Source of the DNA: Trichosphaerium sp. ATCC 40318
Lineage: Eukaryota; Protista; Tubulinea
Reading direction: 5' to 3'
Length of the DNA stretch: 59,029 nucleotides
NCBI GenBank assembly: GCA_038496445.1
Contig: JALMLS010000501.1
Location: 1-59,029, forward strand
In this document: in pieces, positions 8,645-59,029 of the stretch
Layout: each line of letters opens with the position of its first letter
Position numbering within the stretch: position 1 is the first letter of the stretch
Notes under the pieces: model-generated
Database searches by the model: none
What the model was told of the DNA's origin: nothing
The model's input: only the letters and a program-made list of their open reading frames with translations
Position numbers and translations under genes: made by a program

Positions 8645-10125
8645 TCAGTGCGTGCGTACCAGAGTTGACATGCCACATGTGAGCTCATCTCGTATGTTGC
8701 GAAGTAATGTGTCTATGGAGGTTTTTTCTGGAGCGCCTTTACATGTGGGAAGACCCAGTGCTTTGTATATAATTGCAAAACTAACCAAAAGAAAAACAAT
8801 ATTCATCAGTGCTGCAATCGCCCAGAATTCTACCATAGAAGTTGTGATTGCTTTTGATAGCGGCACCCATTTGATGAATATTGGATTAGCGATTGTTGGA
8901 AATGTGACACCATCATCGAGTACCTAGTTTGGACGTCAATTTCGCTAAATGACGATTTCTTTTTTCTCACAAAAACGACAGTGACAACTTATGTTTGTTA
9001 CTGTAATCAGGTGATCACATACCATGACTCTATTTTTTAGATTGTAGCGCTCAATGTCCTTGTCGCTAAGCCTTAGTCCCTGTCTACCACCTTCTTCCCA
9101 CGTGTCAGTACAAGTGTTTTTAATGTAGAAGCAGTCAGTTATATTTCTTGTGTTACGAATTTCACAAACTACAAAGAAGACGGCGGTTTCCTGGAACAAC
9201 ATGTTAGCACATTTGGAATGAACCAAAAAAAAAAGCTGGAAAATATACGCTGAGTTGGGCTGGTGCGTACTGTGTTGTTGGCCAGTGTAGTACTTGCTAT
9301 ATTTATTGTGATTGGTTTTGCACATACTAGGTCATGTGCTTTACCTTTTGTGAGGTGTACTCCAGTGTAACTAGTCATGTAATTGTAAGGAGACTGAAAC
9401 AAAAAAACGAAAGAAAAATTAAACATCACTAAATCAATGATTGAGATCGTACTATTTCGGATTCGCTAAAACCTTGTGTGGTGGCGTAAATTTGTAACCC
9501 AAAACGTCTCTTGGAATGGATTCCTGAAAGCTACATGTAAGTACAACCTAACACATCATTTTCGAGTACGTACTGGCGAATTAAAGTCTTCAACAGACAC
9601 TTCTGCGACACCTGGCAAAAACGATTTAGCACTTCAGTTTGTTTTTATATTATAGTGTTACCTCGTTGTATGTATTGCCAATAAGTGCCTCCAGCTTGTG
9701 CCATAGCAAAGCCAAGAATGAGCGAGAAAAGAATTGCTACGAAAGGCAAAACAAAGCGTAGTGCGCTCAAAAATCTGTCGTTTGTACGTTCTACAATGTG
9801 AATCAGCGATGTTTGGTTGTTTGTTTTGGTGACAAAAATAATTATAAACATTGCGTACTGGCCGACATCAAGTTCCTAAATGCCTTGAAATACACTACAA
9901 ATAGCGCAAGAGTAGCAACCATTGCTATCATGGCGATGGTAGCCACTAATGCAGAAACAAACTATGTGATAACGTCAAAAAACAGTACGTGCATTCGCTC
10001 AAATCGCGTACGATGGGTTGTGTGCTCGCTAGTACCCATAATCCTGTTGCAATAATATTTGCAGCTATCAACAACAGTAGTGCTTCGCCGTACAGAAGCA
10101 CTTGGCGAAAGATCGAGTCATTCAT
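8645..10125 (-). CDS. Hypothetical multi-pass membrane protein (multi-exon; ends approximate)
   Basis: Hydrophobic exons (LLLLIAANIIATGLWVL, IAMIAMVATLALFVVYF, FVLPFVAILFSLILGFA, FWAIAALMNIVFLLVSF) separated by GT-AG introns. Confidence 0.5.
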
Positions 10126-10492
10126 TGCAAGTACTCTCGTTTTCGGTGTTATTTTACTAAAACAGGAAAATGCACCTAAAAGAGAACCTAGCGCAGTTTT
10201 TATGGGAATGCAACGCTTGGTTATAACGCAGGCTTGGTGTGCTTTCGTGACAATAAATTGGCAGCGCTTAAACACCTAAGGCGACTTGTTAGAAGGACTC
10301 ATTTTAAAAAGCAAATCAAAAACACTCAAGGTAGCGATAGAAGTGAGCGTATACTCGGTTTGTGTAGTTCAAAATTTTTGTAAAATGTCACTAGCTACTC
10401 CAGGCTTATAAAAATGCAAGTACGTACGCTACTGTGGCTAGTTTAAATTATCAAGCGATATTAAATTAACGTCTGGTTTTTTGTGGCTAGAA

Positions 10493-13423
10493 ATGACCGT
10501 CGCATACGCTGCAAGAGTCCCAATAGCTCATTGGCACGCGAAAGAGAACCAATGTCACTTTTTAGAAGTAATTGCTAGCAAACTGCGCGTATACACCTTT
10601 AAAGGGTGGTATAAATTAAATCATTATGAATTACAGGATGTAGGAGGTGGTGTATTGCTTGACAAGTGCGTACAACTGTTTGTTAAAGTTCACATTTTCT
10701 TGTTTAACATTAAACCGCTCAGGCACGCCTCCTCGTTATCCAAGTGTTTAATGTGGTGCTACCCTCACTATGAATGGAAGCCGTGGAGGTTTTTGTACGC
10801 GTGAAGTTTGAATAAACGAGTGACACTAACAACAAGCTCTAGTACTACGCCCACAGAATTCTGGCAAAGCTTGGTTAATCAAAAGAGTGTCATCGATGAG
10901 GTAGGGCATAAACTTGGTGTTAAGGATCTCTCGGATTGGTACCAAGTCAATCACTATGACATATCCGCGACCAGTGGTCGTGGTGTGCTTGACATGTGCG
11001 TTATTGTTTTTACAATAATTATGTAATGTGTTGTTAACAACAGCTGATCTTTTGTATCATCAAGGTATGCTCTATCAATCTCGACTTGCCTACAAACTTT
11101 GTATCCAGAGTTTCATTGGAAACCGTGGTACTTTAAGTACGTTAAAGTTAGTTTAATCTAGTTGACAGTTATTTTATTAAGGTTTGCGCCGATGAGGTAT
11201 TGGTCTGATTTGCAGAACCAAAGGGCCGCTCTTGATGATATAGGAGAACACTTAAATGTCAAGGATCTAAGCGGATGGTATAAAATCACAAACAACTCTA
11301 TTTTCGCTCATGGTGGCAAGGGTCTTCTCAACATGTTCGTGAATACATTTTGTTTTATGGGTTTTACTAAATTCTTATCTTTTTTGTAGTTACGGATGCT
11401 CAATGTCTCTTTGCTTTCAAACTGTGTATCCGCAGTACCGGTGGCGACCTTGGCGCTTCACGCACGTGTTTTGTTTTGTATTACAGAAAAAGAGTTTCAC
11501 GTGGAACGTCATCTGACATCACGTGATTAGGTGCGCTCCCATGGGTTATTGGGATAGCGTCTACAATCAAAGAACTGCTTTTGAAGATATAGGTGAAAGC
11601 CTAGGCGTTAAGCACCTTGATGGGTGGTACAAGATTACAGTAAATGACATTATCGACTTTGGCGGTGCTGGTATAATCGGTCACGTGTACGTATTAATGT
11701 TTTAACCACGCTTATGTTCATATAAGAATGTGATACTCAACGTTTGTTTAGTTACAACCACGCTCTTGCACGGTGCCTTAGAAGTATTTATCCGGAACAT
11801 GACTGGCAGCCATGGAAGTTTATGTATGTAGATGCCAAAACCCCAAGAGTGCTTTTTTTTGATTGTTTTTCAAGGTTTAAACCAGTTGGTTTTTGGAAGG
11901 ATCTGGATACTCAACGAAGTGCTTTAGATTATGTAGCAGAAAAACTAGAATTAAAAGATTTGAGCGATTGGTATAGCGTGAAAACTGATGACATTGCTCC
12001 ATATCATGCTCATAGCATTATCTATATGTACCGTAGATCAATCGCTCATTGTGTTCAAACCCTCTACCCTGATTATGAATGGGAAAGAGATAGGTTTCTG
12101 TAAGTGGTTTGAAGTAAGGATTGTGGATGTTAACATATGTATTGATTAGGGTTGTTCCAAAAGGTTACAGGTTGAGTGACTTTTTACGTGAAAAGCGTAA
12201 AAGCAACAGCGATTTGGAGGAACATAGAGTGTTTTTGCATTATCTTGAGCGGCGATTCTCACTCAAAACTCTTGATGACTGGTACACAAAGGTTGGTGTT
12301 ATTACATTTAACAATGCACACACATTGATGAACCGGTACGGTACCTGTACAACAGCTGAATGCTAACCCTTATTTTATTTTGACATCTAAACTAAACCTT
12401 TGGAACGCTAATGTCAAGTAGGTTTGGTTCTGGTAAGCAGGCGTTGAGAGAGTTATACCCTAAGTTTGCTTGGAATGAACAGTTATTTACTTACAAGGAC
12501 ATTATGTTCTGGAAGGACATGTCAAACCAGAAAGAGTTTTTGAGGAGAGTCAAAGAAAAGTTGTTACTTGATAGACCAGAACTATGGTACACCAATGCCC
12601 TAAATACATCAAAGATACATGCTAATTGAAAATGAAGGTACCGTGTAACACTACCACAACTTGTAAGTATGGGAGGCAGTGGATTCCAGAGGTTCTGGCC
12701 AAAAGCTTTAACCATGCTTGAGCCTGATTTTCCGTGGGACTGGAAGTTGTTTCCGCAAAGAAACAAACAAAACAAGCAGTTGTAAGTAATTGTTAACAGG
12801 TTTTTGTTGTCGTCTTACCCCTTCTTGTTAGGTTACTCCTCAAGACTATTACGACTATACTTCCTGATGCCACTATTATTGAGGAAGCTAGGGTCATTGT
12901 ACAGTCTCAAGCCGATTCCTTGAGTGTTGATATTTACTTACCAGAGTATAATCTTGCTCTCGAGTATCAAGGTACATTCAACAATCTTACCAATTTTTTT
13001 TTTGATTTTTGCTGAATGTGAACGTGTAGGGGAACAACATTACAGTGATATATTTGGATGGCACTTGTCTGAAAGACAAAAGATGGTAGATATGGTTAAG
13101 AAACAGCAATGTACTGATGCAGGTAAGAAAAGTTACAAACTTTATGAGATTACGTGGCTTAACATCTTTTTCTCTTCAGGGATATGTTTGGTTCCAATAC
13201 CATATTGGTGGAATGGTGAGGCGGGTCCTATTGTTGCAACTATAAAGCACTATAAACCAGATATAAACCTTGAGAGTCCAGCGAATGCAAGGCCTTTATT
13301 GGAGGGAAATCAAACTGGGTCTACTTCTAAAGGTACTAATACATTTGCAATGTGATTCATGCTCATTGAAAGTAAATAACTTCATTAGGACCTTTAATGA
13401 TTGGATGCGCTCATGTTTTTTAA
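10493..13423 (+). CDS. Protein with about 7 tandem 75-aa repeats (W..NQ...L..DWY...GG...YP..W..W.F) and a C-terminal PD-(D/E)XK/RAP/Vsr-like nuclease domain
   Basis: Repeats are visible in successive ORFs. The C-terminus reads SVDIYLPEYNLALEYQGEQHY...D..KK..C..AGICLVPIPYWW. Introns splice in frame. Confidence 0.8.
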
Positions 13424-54481: not shown

Positions 54482-54912
54482 TTTTCTGACGCTACACCCA
54501 CAAATGGTTTAAACGTCTCTAACGAACAGTCAAAATACTTTTTTAATGAGTACTCACTTAAGAGCACTCACTTAATTGCTCAATACAAAAGACCACCTAC
54601 CAAGTGTCGTCTGGTAGTAGTACGCTACAAGAGGTGCCTATGCTACTAGTGGTAACTTGTACGTGTTTTAGTAAAAGCCTCAATGGAGTATGAAATCTCT
54701 TTGTCTCTCAATATTCCTAGTCTATATTTAGATATCACCTGGCACAACACTTGACACGTTCAACTTTGATGGAGACTTGACACATGACGATGCTTCAGCA
54801 TCGTAACAGTGCCTTTTATTTCCTTCTCATATTATAGTCTAACGAGTATACTTTTTAGGCATACTCTAAAGTAAGACAGAAACTTATTTCTAATGATATT
54901 TTTGTAAACAAT

Positions 54913-57900
54913 TTAGTGGTACAATCCGTTTGGAGCTCCATTTTGAGCTTCAGTCTTATTTTGACTCCCAGAAAATGATTGCACCTATATCATACGTTTA
55001 ATATAAAGGTTTTAAACTACAGAAAATACAAAAAACAAGAGACATCCTGTAGAGATGGAAAAAAAAAGCTGTTTTTTGCCAAGTTTTGGTTTTTTTTAGT
55101 ACCTGTAGAAGAAGTTCTCTGGCTGTTTCGTCAGTAGCAAAATGTGTTCTAATAGGTTCAAGTAATCTGTTAATTTCACGAATTAAATTTCGTCTCAAGT
55201 CTGAAGCAGTGATAAAGCCTTCCTAAAAGAAAAAAATAAGTTTGTGTGAAAAAAAACAAACAAAAAGGACAGTCGCTAGTACTAGGTCACATAATTTTCA
55301 CTCCGAATGGTTACGGGGCCGCAATATATATCCATCGGTAGTGTAGAGTACATAATATTTGTTTTTGAATAAAAGAAAACGTACACTGTAAGCTTTAGTG
55401 AAATCTTGTACTGCTCTAATTTCTATTCTCTTTCCATTTTGTGTATCGAAAACGACTGGAAGGTTTATGATGTTACCATTTCTTGTTTGTACATTAGGAA
55501 TCACAAGGTATTGCATCATTTCTGCACAAGGATTTCCTACTACCTATACAAACACTTGAGCAACTGACCGACTTTTGAAAAAAGTAAAAAAAAATGACAA
55601 AACTCGTACTTGTTTCTCAGGACAATAAGCGTTCATGACCTTTTGCTTAACAACAGCGGGTGTATCATCAACGAATATAGCTGCATCAGCTTTACTTTTA
55701 CTCATCTTACTCTTGCCATACAGGTCACTACAAAACAAAAACTATTAGACTATCACGTGACTTTTTGTTGATTTACAAGGATAAAGAGCTAACAGGAGTG
55801 ATACCTGATGTTTGAAGAAGAAAAAAAAAAGCGTCAAGGTAAAAAGGAAGGTAAAACGCTCAGGACAAGCGAAGAATTTGAACAAATAGAGCGGTATTCG
55901 CTGCAACTTGAGAAAATAAAGCTGCTGGTTTTTTTTTTGAAGTCAGTCGTACCTTATAATTGGGTTTGCTAGTACAATAGGTTTTCTGTACTGTCCTCCT
56001 GACTTATCACAGTATGCTCTAGCCATGTTTATAACTTTTGTTTGATCTGTTCCCATTTGACATACATCAGCGCCTAGAAATAAGGCATCTGCTGCTTGCA
56101 TACAAGTATACATTGCCATAGAAGCAGATAACTCATCCGTTGGTTCTCTTCCCATAATGACAGAACAGTCTTTGACATCAGCCAAATTAAATCTAATAAG
56201 AAGTAAGGAATGGTGGTGAAGGCACAAAATCAGAAAATCTCAAAAAGAATGAAGGTTGTAAAGGGTACTTTGTTGAAATATCAATGACTTGTGACCAATA
56301 TTTATCAGCATATTTTTTTTGTTCTTCTGATGCCCATAAGAATTGAACACGCGATAAATCTAGACCAGATGCTTTAAAAACTTCAATAAAATATTGTCCA
56401 ACAATCTTAATCTTTGATTTATCTCCACCCAACTAACAAAGAAAACAGTGAGCAACCGAACTCCAAAACGAACTAAAAGTCAACCATTTTTCACTTAAAA
56501 AATATCAAACAAAGTTGTTTGGGTTATAGTGGGATCCTTGGGTTACTATTTTTTTTGCTATCGTACACCTACCTTATGATTCATATATGCGAACCAATCG
56601 GCTATTAAAAATAAATATGTAAAACCAGAGGACGTAAGCAATTGAACCATATACTTCTTTGTAAGTATCTAAAAAAACAACACAGGGGTTAAAACACGTT
56701 GAGAACAGATGTGACTGCTTTCAAGTATTTGAATATCATCTAGTGTACCTGTGCTATTGTCATACGCCCACTAGGTTCGCAACCATCAAGTGCAACAGGA
56801 TTTCTACTAATACGAAGTAGTTCTTTAAACTCTTCTACACCACTGCACTCGACAGCCCATCGTGTACATCTATTTAATCTGTCATCGACAGTGAGTGTAG
56901 AGTACGGTGGCGGCAAAGAATATCTAGAGTTTGCAGGATTTGTAACATTCTTGAAGCTCTCAAAGAGAGATACGGGTTTATCAAGCAACTACGTAAAGTC
57001 AAAAAAAAACATCAACACGAAGAGGACTATCTCGAATCTAAGTAATGTACCTCAAGAGCTCTTTTGCAGCAACCATATTCTAAAAACCGTTTCTTTTTGT
57101 CAACGAGAGCGTAAGACTTTTCTATATACGTCCTACATACCAAACGAGTTAGTAATGATACCAACTTGAATTTGATAAAAATGAAAAAAAAGAGAAAACT
57201 TACTTGATTGGGTTTCCAACAGCCTCTAGTACTTCCTCAGCAAGGTTTGGATACTATTATTAAATATCAGTAAGCGTCCAAACAATTGGTTTGAAAACGT
57301 GTAGTTTACATAGGCTAGTAACAGGGAATTAAGGAAATAAAGGAGGCGTACATTTATGTTAAAGTTAAGTGAAATAGCACGATGAAATAGCTGAGCAGTT
57401 CCAGAATTTGCAACCCAATCAGGAACAATACATACATTAGCATCACGGAGTGTCTAAGATAAATATTAACAGATGTACAACCTACGTTGTTAAAAGCTTT
57501 TCATTTTGGCGTACACACTGTACTGATCCAGAATCGTCGCCCACCAATGCACCAGCTGATGTGACAGTACCATAAGGATTGTTTGCTCCACATACGAGAT
57601 ATCTACAACCATGTTAGCAATGCTTTGACTACCGAACTTATTACCTGTCTTTGACGTCTCTCCATGTTGTATGTATCATAGATTGTACAATATCGTTACT
57701 CACTTGATAACGCAATGCACAGGGACTAAAAACTTCTGCCTGCAAGCACAAAGAATGTCAACAAAAACTAAGAAAATTTTAAGATTTGCTCGATGATTAC
57801 CTTTGTACAAGCTAAAAACTGTGCAAGAAACTGTGCGTTACCGACAATTGAAAAATTTTGTGTTCTTGTGACAGCATTAAATTTTTTCTTTTGAGCGGGA

Positions 57901-59029
57901 CTCAAATTGCAGAAGAAGTTTTTAGCACTTTCAGCTATTCGTTTTGGAGAACCTTTAGACATCATCAGCTTTTGTATACGCCTGTAAAAATGACATATTA
58001 GCATCATGTAATGATACATGTTGTTTTGTATTTAAACTCACGCTTGACGTGCACATAATACATCATAGATGTCTAAACCATTATGATCAAAAATGTACCT
58101 TAGAGAAAAAGGTTAGCAAAAAAGTAAAAGGTGATGTTCTATTCCTATTCAAAGACTAACCCATCCTTGTCACATAAGGCGACGACCTTAGCTATATTTC
58201 TATGGACCAAATAATAAGCAAGCGAACTACCAACAGCACCAAAACCTTGAATGATAACACGGAATTTACCTATTCCATAAAAGGTACTGTTAAATGGTGT
58301 AACAACAAAGGTTCTTTTATGTACCAAGACCAGCAGGGTTTGTAAGAGTTATCGCTGTGCGTATAGCTTCTGATATACCATAGCCTACAGAACCCTATTT
58401 GTAACGTTGTTAGCATAAGCGGAACGTAAAAGAATAACAAGGTAACTTTTAAAACAATAAATACAACATCGTACTTCAATGAGCGGGAAAAACTTTTCTT
58501 TACATGCTGGATGTATAATTATAGAGGATAAGTTTCCAGCGCGATTTGGTTGTCCAGTAGCGCGTGAAAATGTCTGTGCTAGTACATGTCTAAATGAAAA
58601 AAAATCAATTGATGTAATTAAATTGTGAAAGAATTACTACAAATCACATACTGCATTGTTGGTAATCCCAAGTCATTTTGAATAACTTGTTCTATAAACC
58701 TGTCATCTGTATTTAAATCTCCTGCTGTAACCCATACATTACTCAAAAGAGTCTTATTATCAATAATGAATCGGCGAAGAACCTGTTAATAGACAATTAA
58801 TGTCTACTTTCGAAAAAAAGAAAAAAAAAAAAAAGTCGTCGTAAATGACGTACTTCTTTTGCCCTGGCATCACGATGATTAAATCGAATACCTATCTTTC
58901 TTTAAAATCAATGTGAGGTGAGGTGACGTTTCATATTTTCATAAGGGAAACGCAAATGTGCTACCAAAAAACGAAAACAGCAATGTGCGTTTTTATAAGC
59001 GATTTTTTAACGTGTTACCACTTACAGAA
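54913..59029 (-). CDS. Fusion of a Glu/Leu/Phe/Val dehydrogenase-like domain and a tyrosyl-tRNA synthetase-like domain (5' end outside the window)
   Basis: Dehydrogenase motifs AGDLNT, VGYG, IQGFGAVG, FSPCA, CGANNP and PDWVANSG. TyrRS motifs DGCEPSGRM, IADWFA, FLWAS, MQAAD, QMGTDQ, KMSKS and AYCP. Linker exons splice in frame with no stop. Confidence 0.85.

Follow-up and report, generated by a model that had tools for sequence, protein, structure and literature searches.

We analyzed a 59,029-nucleotide (nt) stretch of the genome of Trichosphaerium sp. ATCC 40318 (GenBank assembly GCA_038496445.1, contig JALMLS010000501.1; this whole stretch is hereafter called the window) and found that its minus strand encodes, at 58898-54913, an ELFV-type amino acid dehydrogenase joined in one spliced protein to a module that resembles tyrosyl-tRNA synthetase (TyrRS). 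Sequence comparison places the gene in a monophyletic family of dehydrogenase-TyrRS fusions, in which both active sites are normally intact; the window copy is an exception within this family, as judged from the dismantled residues of its synthetase site. We think it rather likely that the product is an active dehydrogenase with a substrate other than glutamate, which carries a catalytically impaired pseudo-synthetase module.

The dehydrogenase and TyrRS-like halves are joined in one spliced protein

Positions 59029-54600 of the minus strand were read and spliced by script. Nineteen exons between 58782 and 54913 gave a spliced sequence of 2289 nt (762 codons), in which the sole stop was the terminal TAA at 54915-54913. 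All introns of this 19-exon model possessed GT donors and AG acceptors, and the alternative frames of the spliced sequence contained 42 and 78 stops. A further upstream exon at 58898-58854 encodes KIGIRFNHRDARAKE, which contains family invariants and is identical at 12 of 15 positions to residues 102-116 of P0002, a homologous protein of 827 amino acids encoded by a single open reading frame (ORF). The first codon of this exon (Lys, 58898-58896) aligned with the family-invariant K102 of P0002, which lies in a GGAK motif. The window part of the fusion gene comprises 20 exons and 19 introns, its frame is open from position 58898 down to the stop (54913), and the 5' end of the gene lies beyond the window edge (base 59029). 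An earlier reading of the DNA, made from sequence only, had proposed that the two domains were connected without a stop through the exons 57253-57204, 57132-57051, and 56988-56749, with GT-AG introns of phases 0/2/0. When the minus strand was read again, these exons and phases matched exactly, and the connection was borne out as part of the uninterrupted 762-codon frame.

After the upstream exon, the rest of the ELFV dehydrogenase half is encoded by eleven exons within 58782-57051 (58782-58652, 58589-58475, 58394-58325, 58269-58161, 58098-58042, 57981-57801, 57739-57645, 57602-57515, 57453-57352, 57253-57204, and 57132-57051), as assigned from splicing, Pfam, alignment with P0002, and three RNA joints. 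A GT-AG intron of 62 nt (57050-56989) separates the last of these from exon 12 (56988-56749). Exon 12 encodes an interdomain linker (LLDKP...PPPYSTL, 56988-56890), the counterpart of a lower-confidence coil in the P0002 structure model described below, and then the first part of the TyrRS-like catalytic domain (56889-56749), in which the altered site LDGCEPSGRMTIAQ was recognized by comparison with the family and with structures in the Protein Data Bank (PDB). The remaining TyrRS-like domain and the C-terminal anticodon-binding part occupy seven exons within 56668-54913 (56668-56573, 56432-56269, 56192-55953, 55727-55610, 55543-55385, 55222-55103, and 54984-54913, which ends with the stop TAA). 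The 3' untranslated region (54912-54809) was covered by a spliced contig of sequencing run X2.

RNA contigs of sequencing runs were compared with positions 54700-59029 of the window. Most of the gene is expressed, and 10 of its 19 introns in the window were seen removed. An X1 contig of 1105 nt contained the joints 56749|56668, 56573|56432, 56269|56192, 55953|55727, 55610|55543, 55385|55222, and 55103|54984, which represent all seven introns of the synthetase part. A second X1 contig, with the joints 57352|57253 and 57204|57132, connected the PDWVANSGTAQLFHR-encoding dehydrogenase exon to two small exons, and X2 and X4 contigs contained the joint 57801|57739. The X1 contigs were 100% alike to the window except for one synonymous C>T difference. 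One X2 contig (57177-57273) covered the exon 57253-57204 together with unspliced intron flanks, which soon diverged from the window and ended loose; besides spliced RNA, X2 therefore contains DNA of the genome or pre-mRNA from a related amoeba.

Within 57400-56800, the region for which the sequence-only reading had suggested an RNA check, the joints 57352|57253 and 57204|57132 were observed, but the decisive joint 57051|56988 was spanned by none of the listed RNA contigs. A protein search for short ORF fragments bridging the joint between exons 11 and 12 found none. When 1.84 billion representative proteins were scanned in full with exon 12, three informative matches were obtained: P0002, which matched at residues 467-536; P0006, a fragment that crosses the dehydrogenase/TyrRS junction; and P0001, a fragment of 422 amino acids from a eukaryotic Trinity transcriptome, which extends from the last dehydrogenase helices through the TyrRS part. 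The spliced window protein was colinear with residues 117-825 of P0002 (46% identity over 744 positions), and the alignment was gapless at the boundary between exons 11 and 12, with KRALE|LLDKP opposite KLAAE|RLKQP. Further, keeping the 62-nt intron led to an in-frame stop after eight codons, and exon 12 had no in-frame ATG ahead of the active-site motif. We accepted the joint because of these three results, which are strong, if indirect. Splicing, partial RNA evidence, and colinear single-ORF homologues thus confirm that an ELFV dehydrogenase is fused in frame to a TyrRS-like domain of class Ic.

The gap in RNA coverage at 57051|56988 would also fit two adjacent genes that were wrongly joined, that is, a dehydrogenase gene with its end near 57027, followed by an independent TyrRS-like gene from ~56988. 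We regard this as extremely improbable. The exons are just 62 nt apart and the second has no in-frame start before the active-site motif, both halves lie in one uninterrupted ORF in full-length homologues that align without a gap at the joint, and the transcript fragments P0001 and P0006 of other organisms cross the same junction. We also considered a trans-spliced or operon-type downstream cistron; the absence of an in-frame start codon from exon 12 led us to reject it.

The dehydrogenase half is conserved and probably acts on a substrate other than glutamate

Pfam, structure, and NCBIfam searches were performed with single exons of the window or with P0002, and the whole spliced protein was analyzed with local scripts. 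P0002 scored above the Pfam cut-offs for ELFV_dehydrog_N and ELFV_dehydrog (61.6 and 42.4 bits) and for tRNA-synt_1b. Among single window exons, the best match to ELFV_dehydrog was obtained with 58267-58163 (4.7e-4; 20.4 bits versus a cut-off of 23.4).

For residue comparisons we used 138 columns conserved in at least 95% of 40 full-length family members (P0002 and P0029-P0067; positions are given in P0002 numbering). In the part of the dehydrogenase half that lies in the window, 55 of the 59 conserved columns were kept, and the four changes were mild (C>M, A>K, L>I, and C>V). Family invariants aligned with three residues of ELFV enzymes, namely the catalytic Lys (K102), the alpha-carboxyl Lys (K90), and the Asp (D138). 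The window copy possesses the equivalent of the catalytic Lys, TAGDLNT (Asp codon 58719-58717), the Rossmann motif GFGAVG (58246-58229), and PDWVANSGTAQLFHR; the K90 position lies outside the window.

The top solved matches of the P0002 dehydrogenase half were small hexameric glutamate dehydrogenases (GDHs; PDB 1b26/2tmg and 4xgi), to which it was similar at ~1e-13 and with which it shares the ELFV_N and ELFV domains, the Lys/Lys/Asp set, and a Rossmann GxGxxG. However, P0002 was far under every NCBIfam GDH cut-off (59 versus 620 bits). The fusion family also differs from these enzymes in the motifs GGGIFMH and ANSGTAQLFHR, which are common to stand-alone relatives of ~460 amino acids. In the comparison of P0002 with GDH 4xgi, Gly stood opposite the Lys of GPxKGG (GPGKGG), and Phe stood opposite the Ser in the NAGGV..S stretch. 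In Clostridium symbiosum GDH, this Lys and this Ser are the two ligands of the glutamate gamma-carboxylate. The window copy likewise has this Phe (LFHR), and the Gly/Lys position is outside the window. Because the whole family has Gly and Phe at the sites of the two glutamate side-chain ligands, the substrate is probably not glutamate. Given the fused partner, an aromatic or hydrophobic amino acid would be a reasonable guess.

The synthetase active site of the window copy has lost invariant residues

The exon 56191-55955 matched tRNA-synt_1b in Pfam (1.2e-10; 41.7 bits versus a cut-off of 21.1), and the NCBIfam tyrosine--tRNA ligase model matched three window exons; the TyrRS half of P0002 exceeded the cut-off of this model (301 versus 220 bits). 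Against a local profile built from 102 canonical TyrRS, the TyrRS half of the window protein scored 396 bits, which lies in the range of the family (313-588). The closest solved structures to the TyrRS exons were cytosolic TyrRS of the plant and apicomplexan type (PDB 3vgj, 8zmi, and 7sc6; 1.7e-17 for 56191-55955), which have the YDGFEPSGRMHIAQ-type N-terminal motif family, KMSKS, and the C-terminal domain in common with the fusion proteins. Further, named TyrRS of plants, algae, and oomycetes were 55-62% identical to the TyrRS half of P0002. In contrast to these enzymes, the window module sits behind a dehydrogenase and has Leu, Cys, and Thr in place of the pocket Tyr, the adjacent Phe, and the His of the HIGH motif.

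These replacements belong to a broader change in the window copy, which keeps 53 of the 65 conserved TyrRS columns. At the place of the family YDGFEPSGRMHIAQ it has LDGCEPSGRMTIAQ, with Y523L (pocket Tyr to Leu, codon 56790-56788), F526C (the nearby Phe to Cys, codon 56781-56779), and H533T (HIGH His to Thr, codon 56760-56758; MTIAQ for MHIAQ); each of the three residues is invariant in the 40 other sequences (40/40), and the His is also present in the PDB matches. Other changes include W557L, W587F, H697N, and G702D. Neither the Y>L nor the H>T change was found in any other family member examined, and P0001, the sequence most closely related to the window copy, has the canonical residues. KMSKS is kept (55708-55694), and four residues of the pocket are unchanged, namely Tyr, Gln, Asp, and Gln (YTCMQAAD and CQMG). 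The tyrosine-pocket positions were mapped to residues of human and M. jannaschii TyrRS; the lost Tyr and the unchanged Asp are those that contact the hydroxyl of the substrate. As a rule, the TyrRS half is the better conserved half in the family. The ratio of TyrRS identity to dehydrogenase identity was 0.96 for the window copy versus a family median of 1.17, and a value as low was found in 1 of 40 members.

Some other members show unusual synthetase motifs as well. P0063, which has the lowest TyrRS/dehydrogenase conservation ratio of the family, contains YNGFENSG, and P0063 and P0070 have YSACQIADTQML / YAACQISDTQML instead of YPCMQCADIFFL. Drift of the synthetase half may thus have occurred repeatedly in the family.

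An AlphaFold2 model of P0002, computed as a monomer from a 22-sequence family alignment (oligomers are beyond such a model), had a mean predicted local distance difference test score (pLDDT) of 88 and a predicted template modeling score (pTM) of 0.58. It consisted of two well-folded modules and, between them, a lower-confidence coil at 462-489. A fixed channel between the two active sites receives no support from this model. This bears on the proposal of the sequence-only reading that a keto acid is aminated and then activated by a channelled enzyme. In a fully active two-step enzyme, the dehydrogenase would make tyrosine or a close analogue from the keto acid, and the fused synthetase would activate it and load it on tRNA. 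Both halves are intact and co-conserved in ~40 family members, the glutamate-specific ligands are gone from the dehydrogenase pocket, as would fit a hydrophobic or aromatic substrate, and the window copy retains KMSKS and most pocket residues. Nevertheless, the window copy alone has lost the HIGH His, the pocket Tyr, and the adjacent Phe, and in the model the coil links the domains without confident placement or interdomain contact. We regard such an enzyme as quite unlikely in this amoeba.

Alternatively, the synthetase may have been re-specified, so that a module with Leu instead of the hydroxyl-binding Tyr would bind, and perhaps adenylate, another aromatic amino acid supplied by its own dehydrogenase, for a use other than standard translation. 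Replacement of the Tyr32 equivalent is a route by which archaeal TyrRS has been re-engineered for unnatural aromatic amino acids, and this is the Tyr lost here. The changes cluster in the substrate and ATP site, the fold signal is strong (396 bits), and the frame is intact and expressed, all in favor of this reading. On the other hand, bacterial TyrRS mutants that lack the sole His of the HIGH motif usually lose most of their adenylation rate, and the window copy has lost this His. In addition, no partner gene or product is known and P0001 keeps the canonical residues. Re-specification is therefore an unlikely account in our view. A similarly small chance falls to the wider proposal that the family is truly bifunctional, making an aromatic amino acid and feeding it to its own synthetase, and that the amoeba module has been re-specified for a different aromatic amino acid.

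Contigs of X2 and X4, whose source is a closely related organism or allele, differed from the window at 19 exonic positions. All 19 differences were at third positions and synonymous, and 22% of possible changes are synonymous; the compared exons are under purifying selection. Fourteen of the differences lay in dehydrogenase exons and four in exon 12, three of them in the linker and one in the first residue after it; one lay in the synthetase domain proper. Purifying selection was clearly evident for the dehydrogenase and the linker. A decaying non-functional duplicate or leftover haplotig might be suspected, in that the window ends within the gene and active-site residues are lost. It is very unlikely, however, given 20 exons with neither a frameshift nor a stop, splice sites that are all canonical, transcription and splicing of the gene, and 19 of 19 differences from the relative that are synonymous.

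We therefore return to the dehydrogenase with an impaired pseudo-synthetase. One expressed, intron-rich protist gene would give a single protein, composed of a divergent ELFV dehydrogenase, a flexible linker of ~30 residues, and a complete TyrRS-like module of the plant/archaeal type. Its conserved dehydrogenase half would probably be an active NAD(P)-dependent enzyme for an amino acid other than glutamate. Because the HIGH His, the Tyr that binds the tyrosine hydroxyl, and the adjacent Phe are lost, the synthetase half would most likely be impaired in aminoacylation. The module may have been retained for dimerization or for ligand or tRNA binding, and it would not be the working TyrRS of the cell. 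The sequence-only reading had offered, as its alternative, a dehydrogenase regulated by an amino acid- or tRNA-sensing domain; a ligand- or tRNA-binding non-catalytic module of this kind would fit the window copy better than channelling.

Several observations weigh against this interpretation. KMSKS and four of five tyrosine-contact residues are kept and the module scores 396 bits against canonical TyrRS, and residual or altered synthetase activity is possible for these reasons. Constraint on the synthetase domain is poorly measured because only 1 of the 19 differences falls in the domain proper. Further, the N-terminal part of the dehydrogenase is outside the window, and at the joint 57051|56988, which no contig spans, X1 depth was zero in the bin 56875-57019.

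The double-length, pseudo-dimeric TyrRS of Leishmania (PDB 3p0h and 5usf), which matched a window exon at 1.1e-13, provides a precedent, in that a dead synthetase module is retained for structure within a longer polypeptide. Reportedly, one of the two copies in its structure is catalytically degenerate. The partner there is a second TyrRS copy, whereas the gene in the window pairs a dehydrogenase with a degenerate copy as the sole synthetase module.

The fusion family and its distribution

A search with P0002 yielded ~40 further clusters (at 90% identity) of 737-919 amino acids with ELFV_dehydrog_N, ELFV_dehydrog, and tRNA-synt_1b. These originated from JGI, ENA, Logan, and NCBI, and seven had been named automatically as 'tyrosyl-tRNA synthetase' by JGI. 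The same search also gave stand-alone dehydrogenases of ~460 amino acids with 44-50% identity. This answers the architecture search that the sequence-only reading had proposed. Its statement that the pairing was not known as a described architecture stood in one respect, since full-text literature searches, with subscription journals outside their coverage, found no description of a dehydrogenase-TyrRS fusion. In the other respect the pairing is not a one-off: ~40 full-length relatives carry the same three Pfam domains. The sequence-only reading had named an architecture both described and widespread as refuting it, and the second part of this condition applies.

In maximum-likelihood trees of the TyrRS half, 39 fusion sequences including the window copy were placed on one side of a branch with a support of 99.9 in the Shimodaira-Hasegawa-like approximate likelihood ratio test. 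The other side comprised canonical eukaryotic TyrRS, TyrRS from metagenome-assembled genomes (MAGs) of giant viruses, and prokaryotic (archaeal) TyrRS. The window copy was sister to P0001 (support 100) with an end branch of 0.78-0.92, versus a median of 0.40-0.48. The phylogenetic test thus placed the TyrRS half of the window within the fusion clade, and this unrooted tree fits a single origin of the fusion.

The fusion is carried in an assembly of eukaryotic origin, in a transcriptome, and in metagenome contigs that are dense and virus-like, and the GC content of carrier contigs ranged from 26% to 63%. In the contig L003 (NCBI assembly GCA_040384025.1), two GT-AG introns of ~45-50 nt interrupt the synthetase part of the fusion gene (12190-12480), and L003 is therefore eukaryotic. 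A prokaryote-style gene caller had cut this gene at the introns into products of 737 and 72 amino acids. The contigs L024, L026, and L028 are intron-free and 84-92% coding, with many ORFs that have no Pfam match, and L028 also encodes a type II topoisomerase in a single ORF. In these features, the three contigs look like giant viruses. A search of IMG/VR with the L028 topoisomerase II found no close relative, and the mimivirus-type AAAATTGA motif occurred 6 times in L028 (4.7 expected) and 19 times in L024 (11.4 expected). Neither test was decisive, so that 'virus-like' stays a reading of gene density, ORFans, and Pfam content alone. The GC content of the L024 fusion gene (10001-12388) is 42%, versus 26.5% for its contig, a large contrast that could reflect recent acquisition or merely protein constraint.

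The fusion was not found in IMG/VR, in which all 19 matches covered the synthetase half only and represented stand-alone TyrRS from giant-virus MAGs (GVMAGs). Such TyrRS (Mimivirus, PDB 2j5b; GVMAG contigs in IMG/VR) are of the same type as the TyrRS half of the family (45-54% identity), and some fusion genes lie on dense, ORFan-rich contigs of virus-like appearance. In contrast to the fusion proteins, they lack the dehydrogenase in all 19 of 19 matches and grouped with canonical eukaryotic TyrRS, outside the fusion clade. Nor was the fusion found in prokaryotes (one genome for each of 185,579 species), in which the best 80 matches, mostly from DPANN and Asgard archaea, all covered the synthetase half only. 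A search of the ESM Atlas with P0002 gave no usable match. In P0004 (465 amino acids), the ~110 N-terminal residues resemble the linker and TyrRS start and then pass abruptly into the PAS-HisKA-HATPase_c domains of a bacterial histidine kinase; it looks like a chimeric assembly and not a real protein.

The mixed distribution of the family among eukaryotes and virus-like contigs is worth following up because heavy gene traffic between Trichosphaerium and giant viruses has been reported (PMC10521059).

Introns and base composition of the window

Thirteen of the 19 window introns of the fusion gene have donors that start with GTAC (gtacgcc, gtacatt, and gtacgag, and gtacgtc after the upstream exon), instead of the usual GTAAGT or GTATGT, and several contain a CTAAC-like branch site. 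The donor preference may be species-wide. The GC content of the window is 38.7% and its introns are short; in the published Trichosphaerium genome, the GC content is 37.7% and introns average 75 bp (PMC10521059). Along the window, GC falls from 51% in the first 2 kb to 44% by 4-6 kb and is 35-40% in the remainder.

Implications of the fusion

Aminoacyl-tRNA synthetases often gain accessory domains. The fusion of a synthetase to a metabolic amino acid dehydrogenase is, as far as we found, undescribed, and here a whole clade possesses it with both active sites conserved. The finding settles no long-standing question; it offers targets for biochemistry. The clade points to a functional link between the making or sensing of amino acids and the charging of tRNA in protists and probably in giant viruses. 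Within it, the amoeba copy would be a natural experiment, in which the dehydrogenase has been conserved and the synthetase site dismantled, and the module has most likely been kept for something besides the activation of tyrosine.

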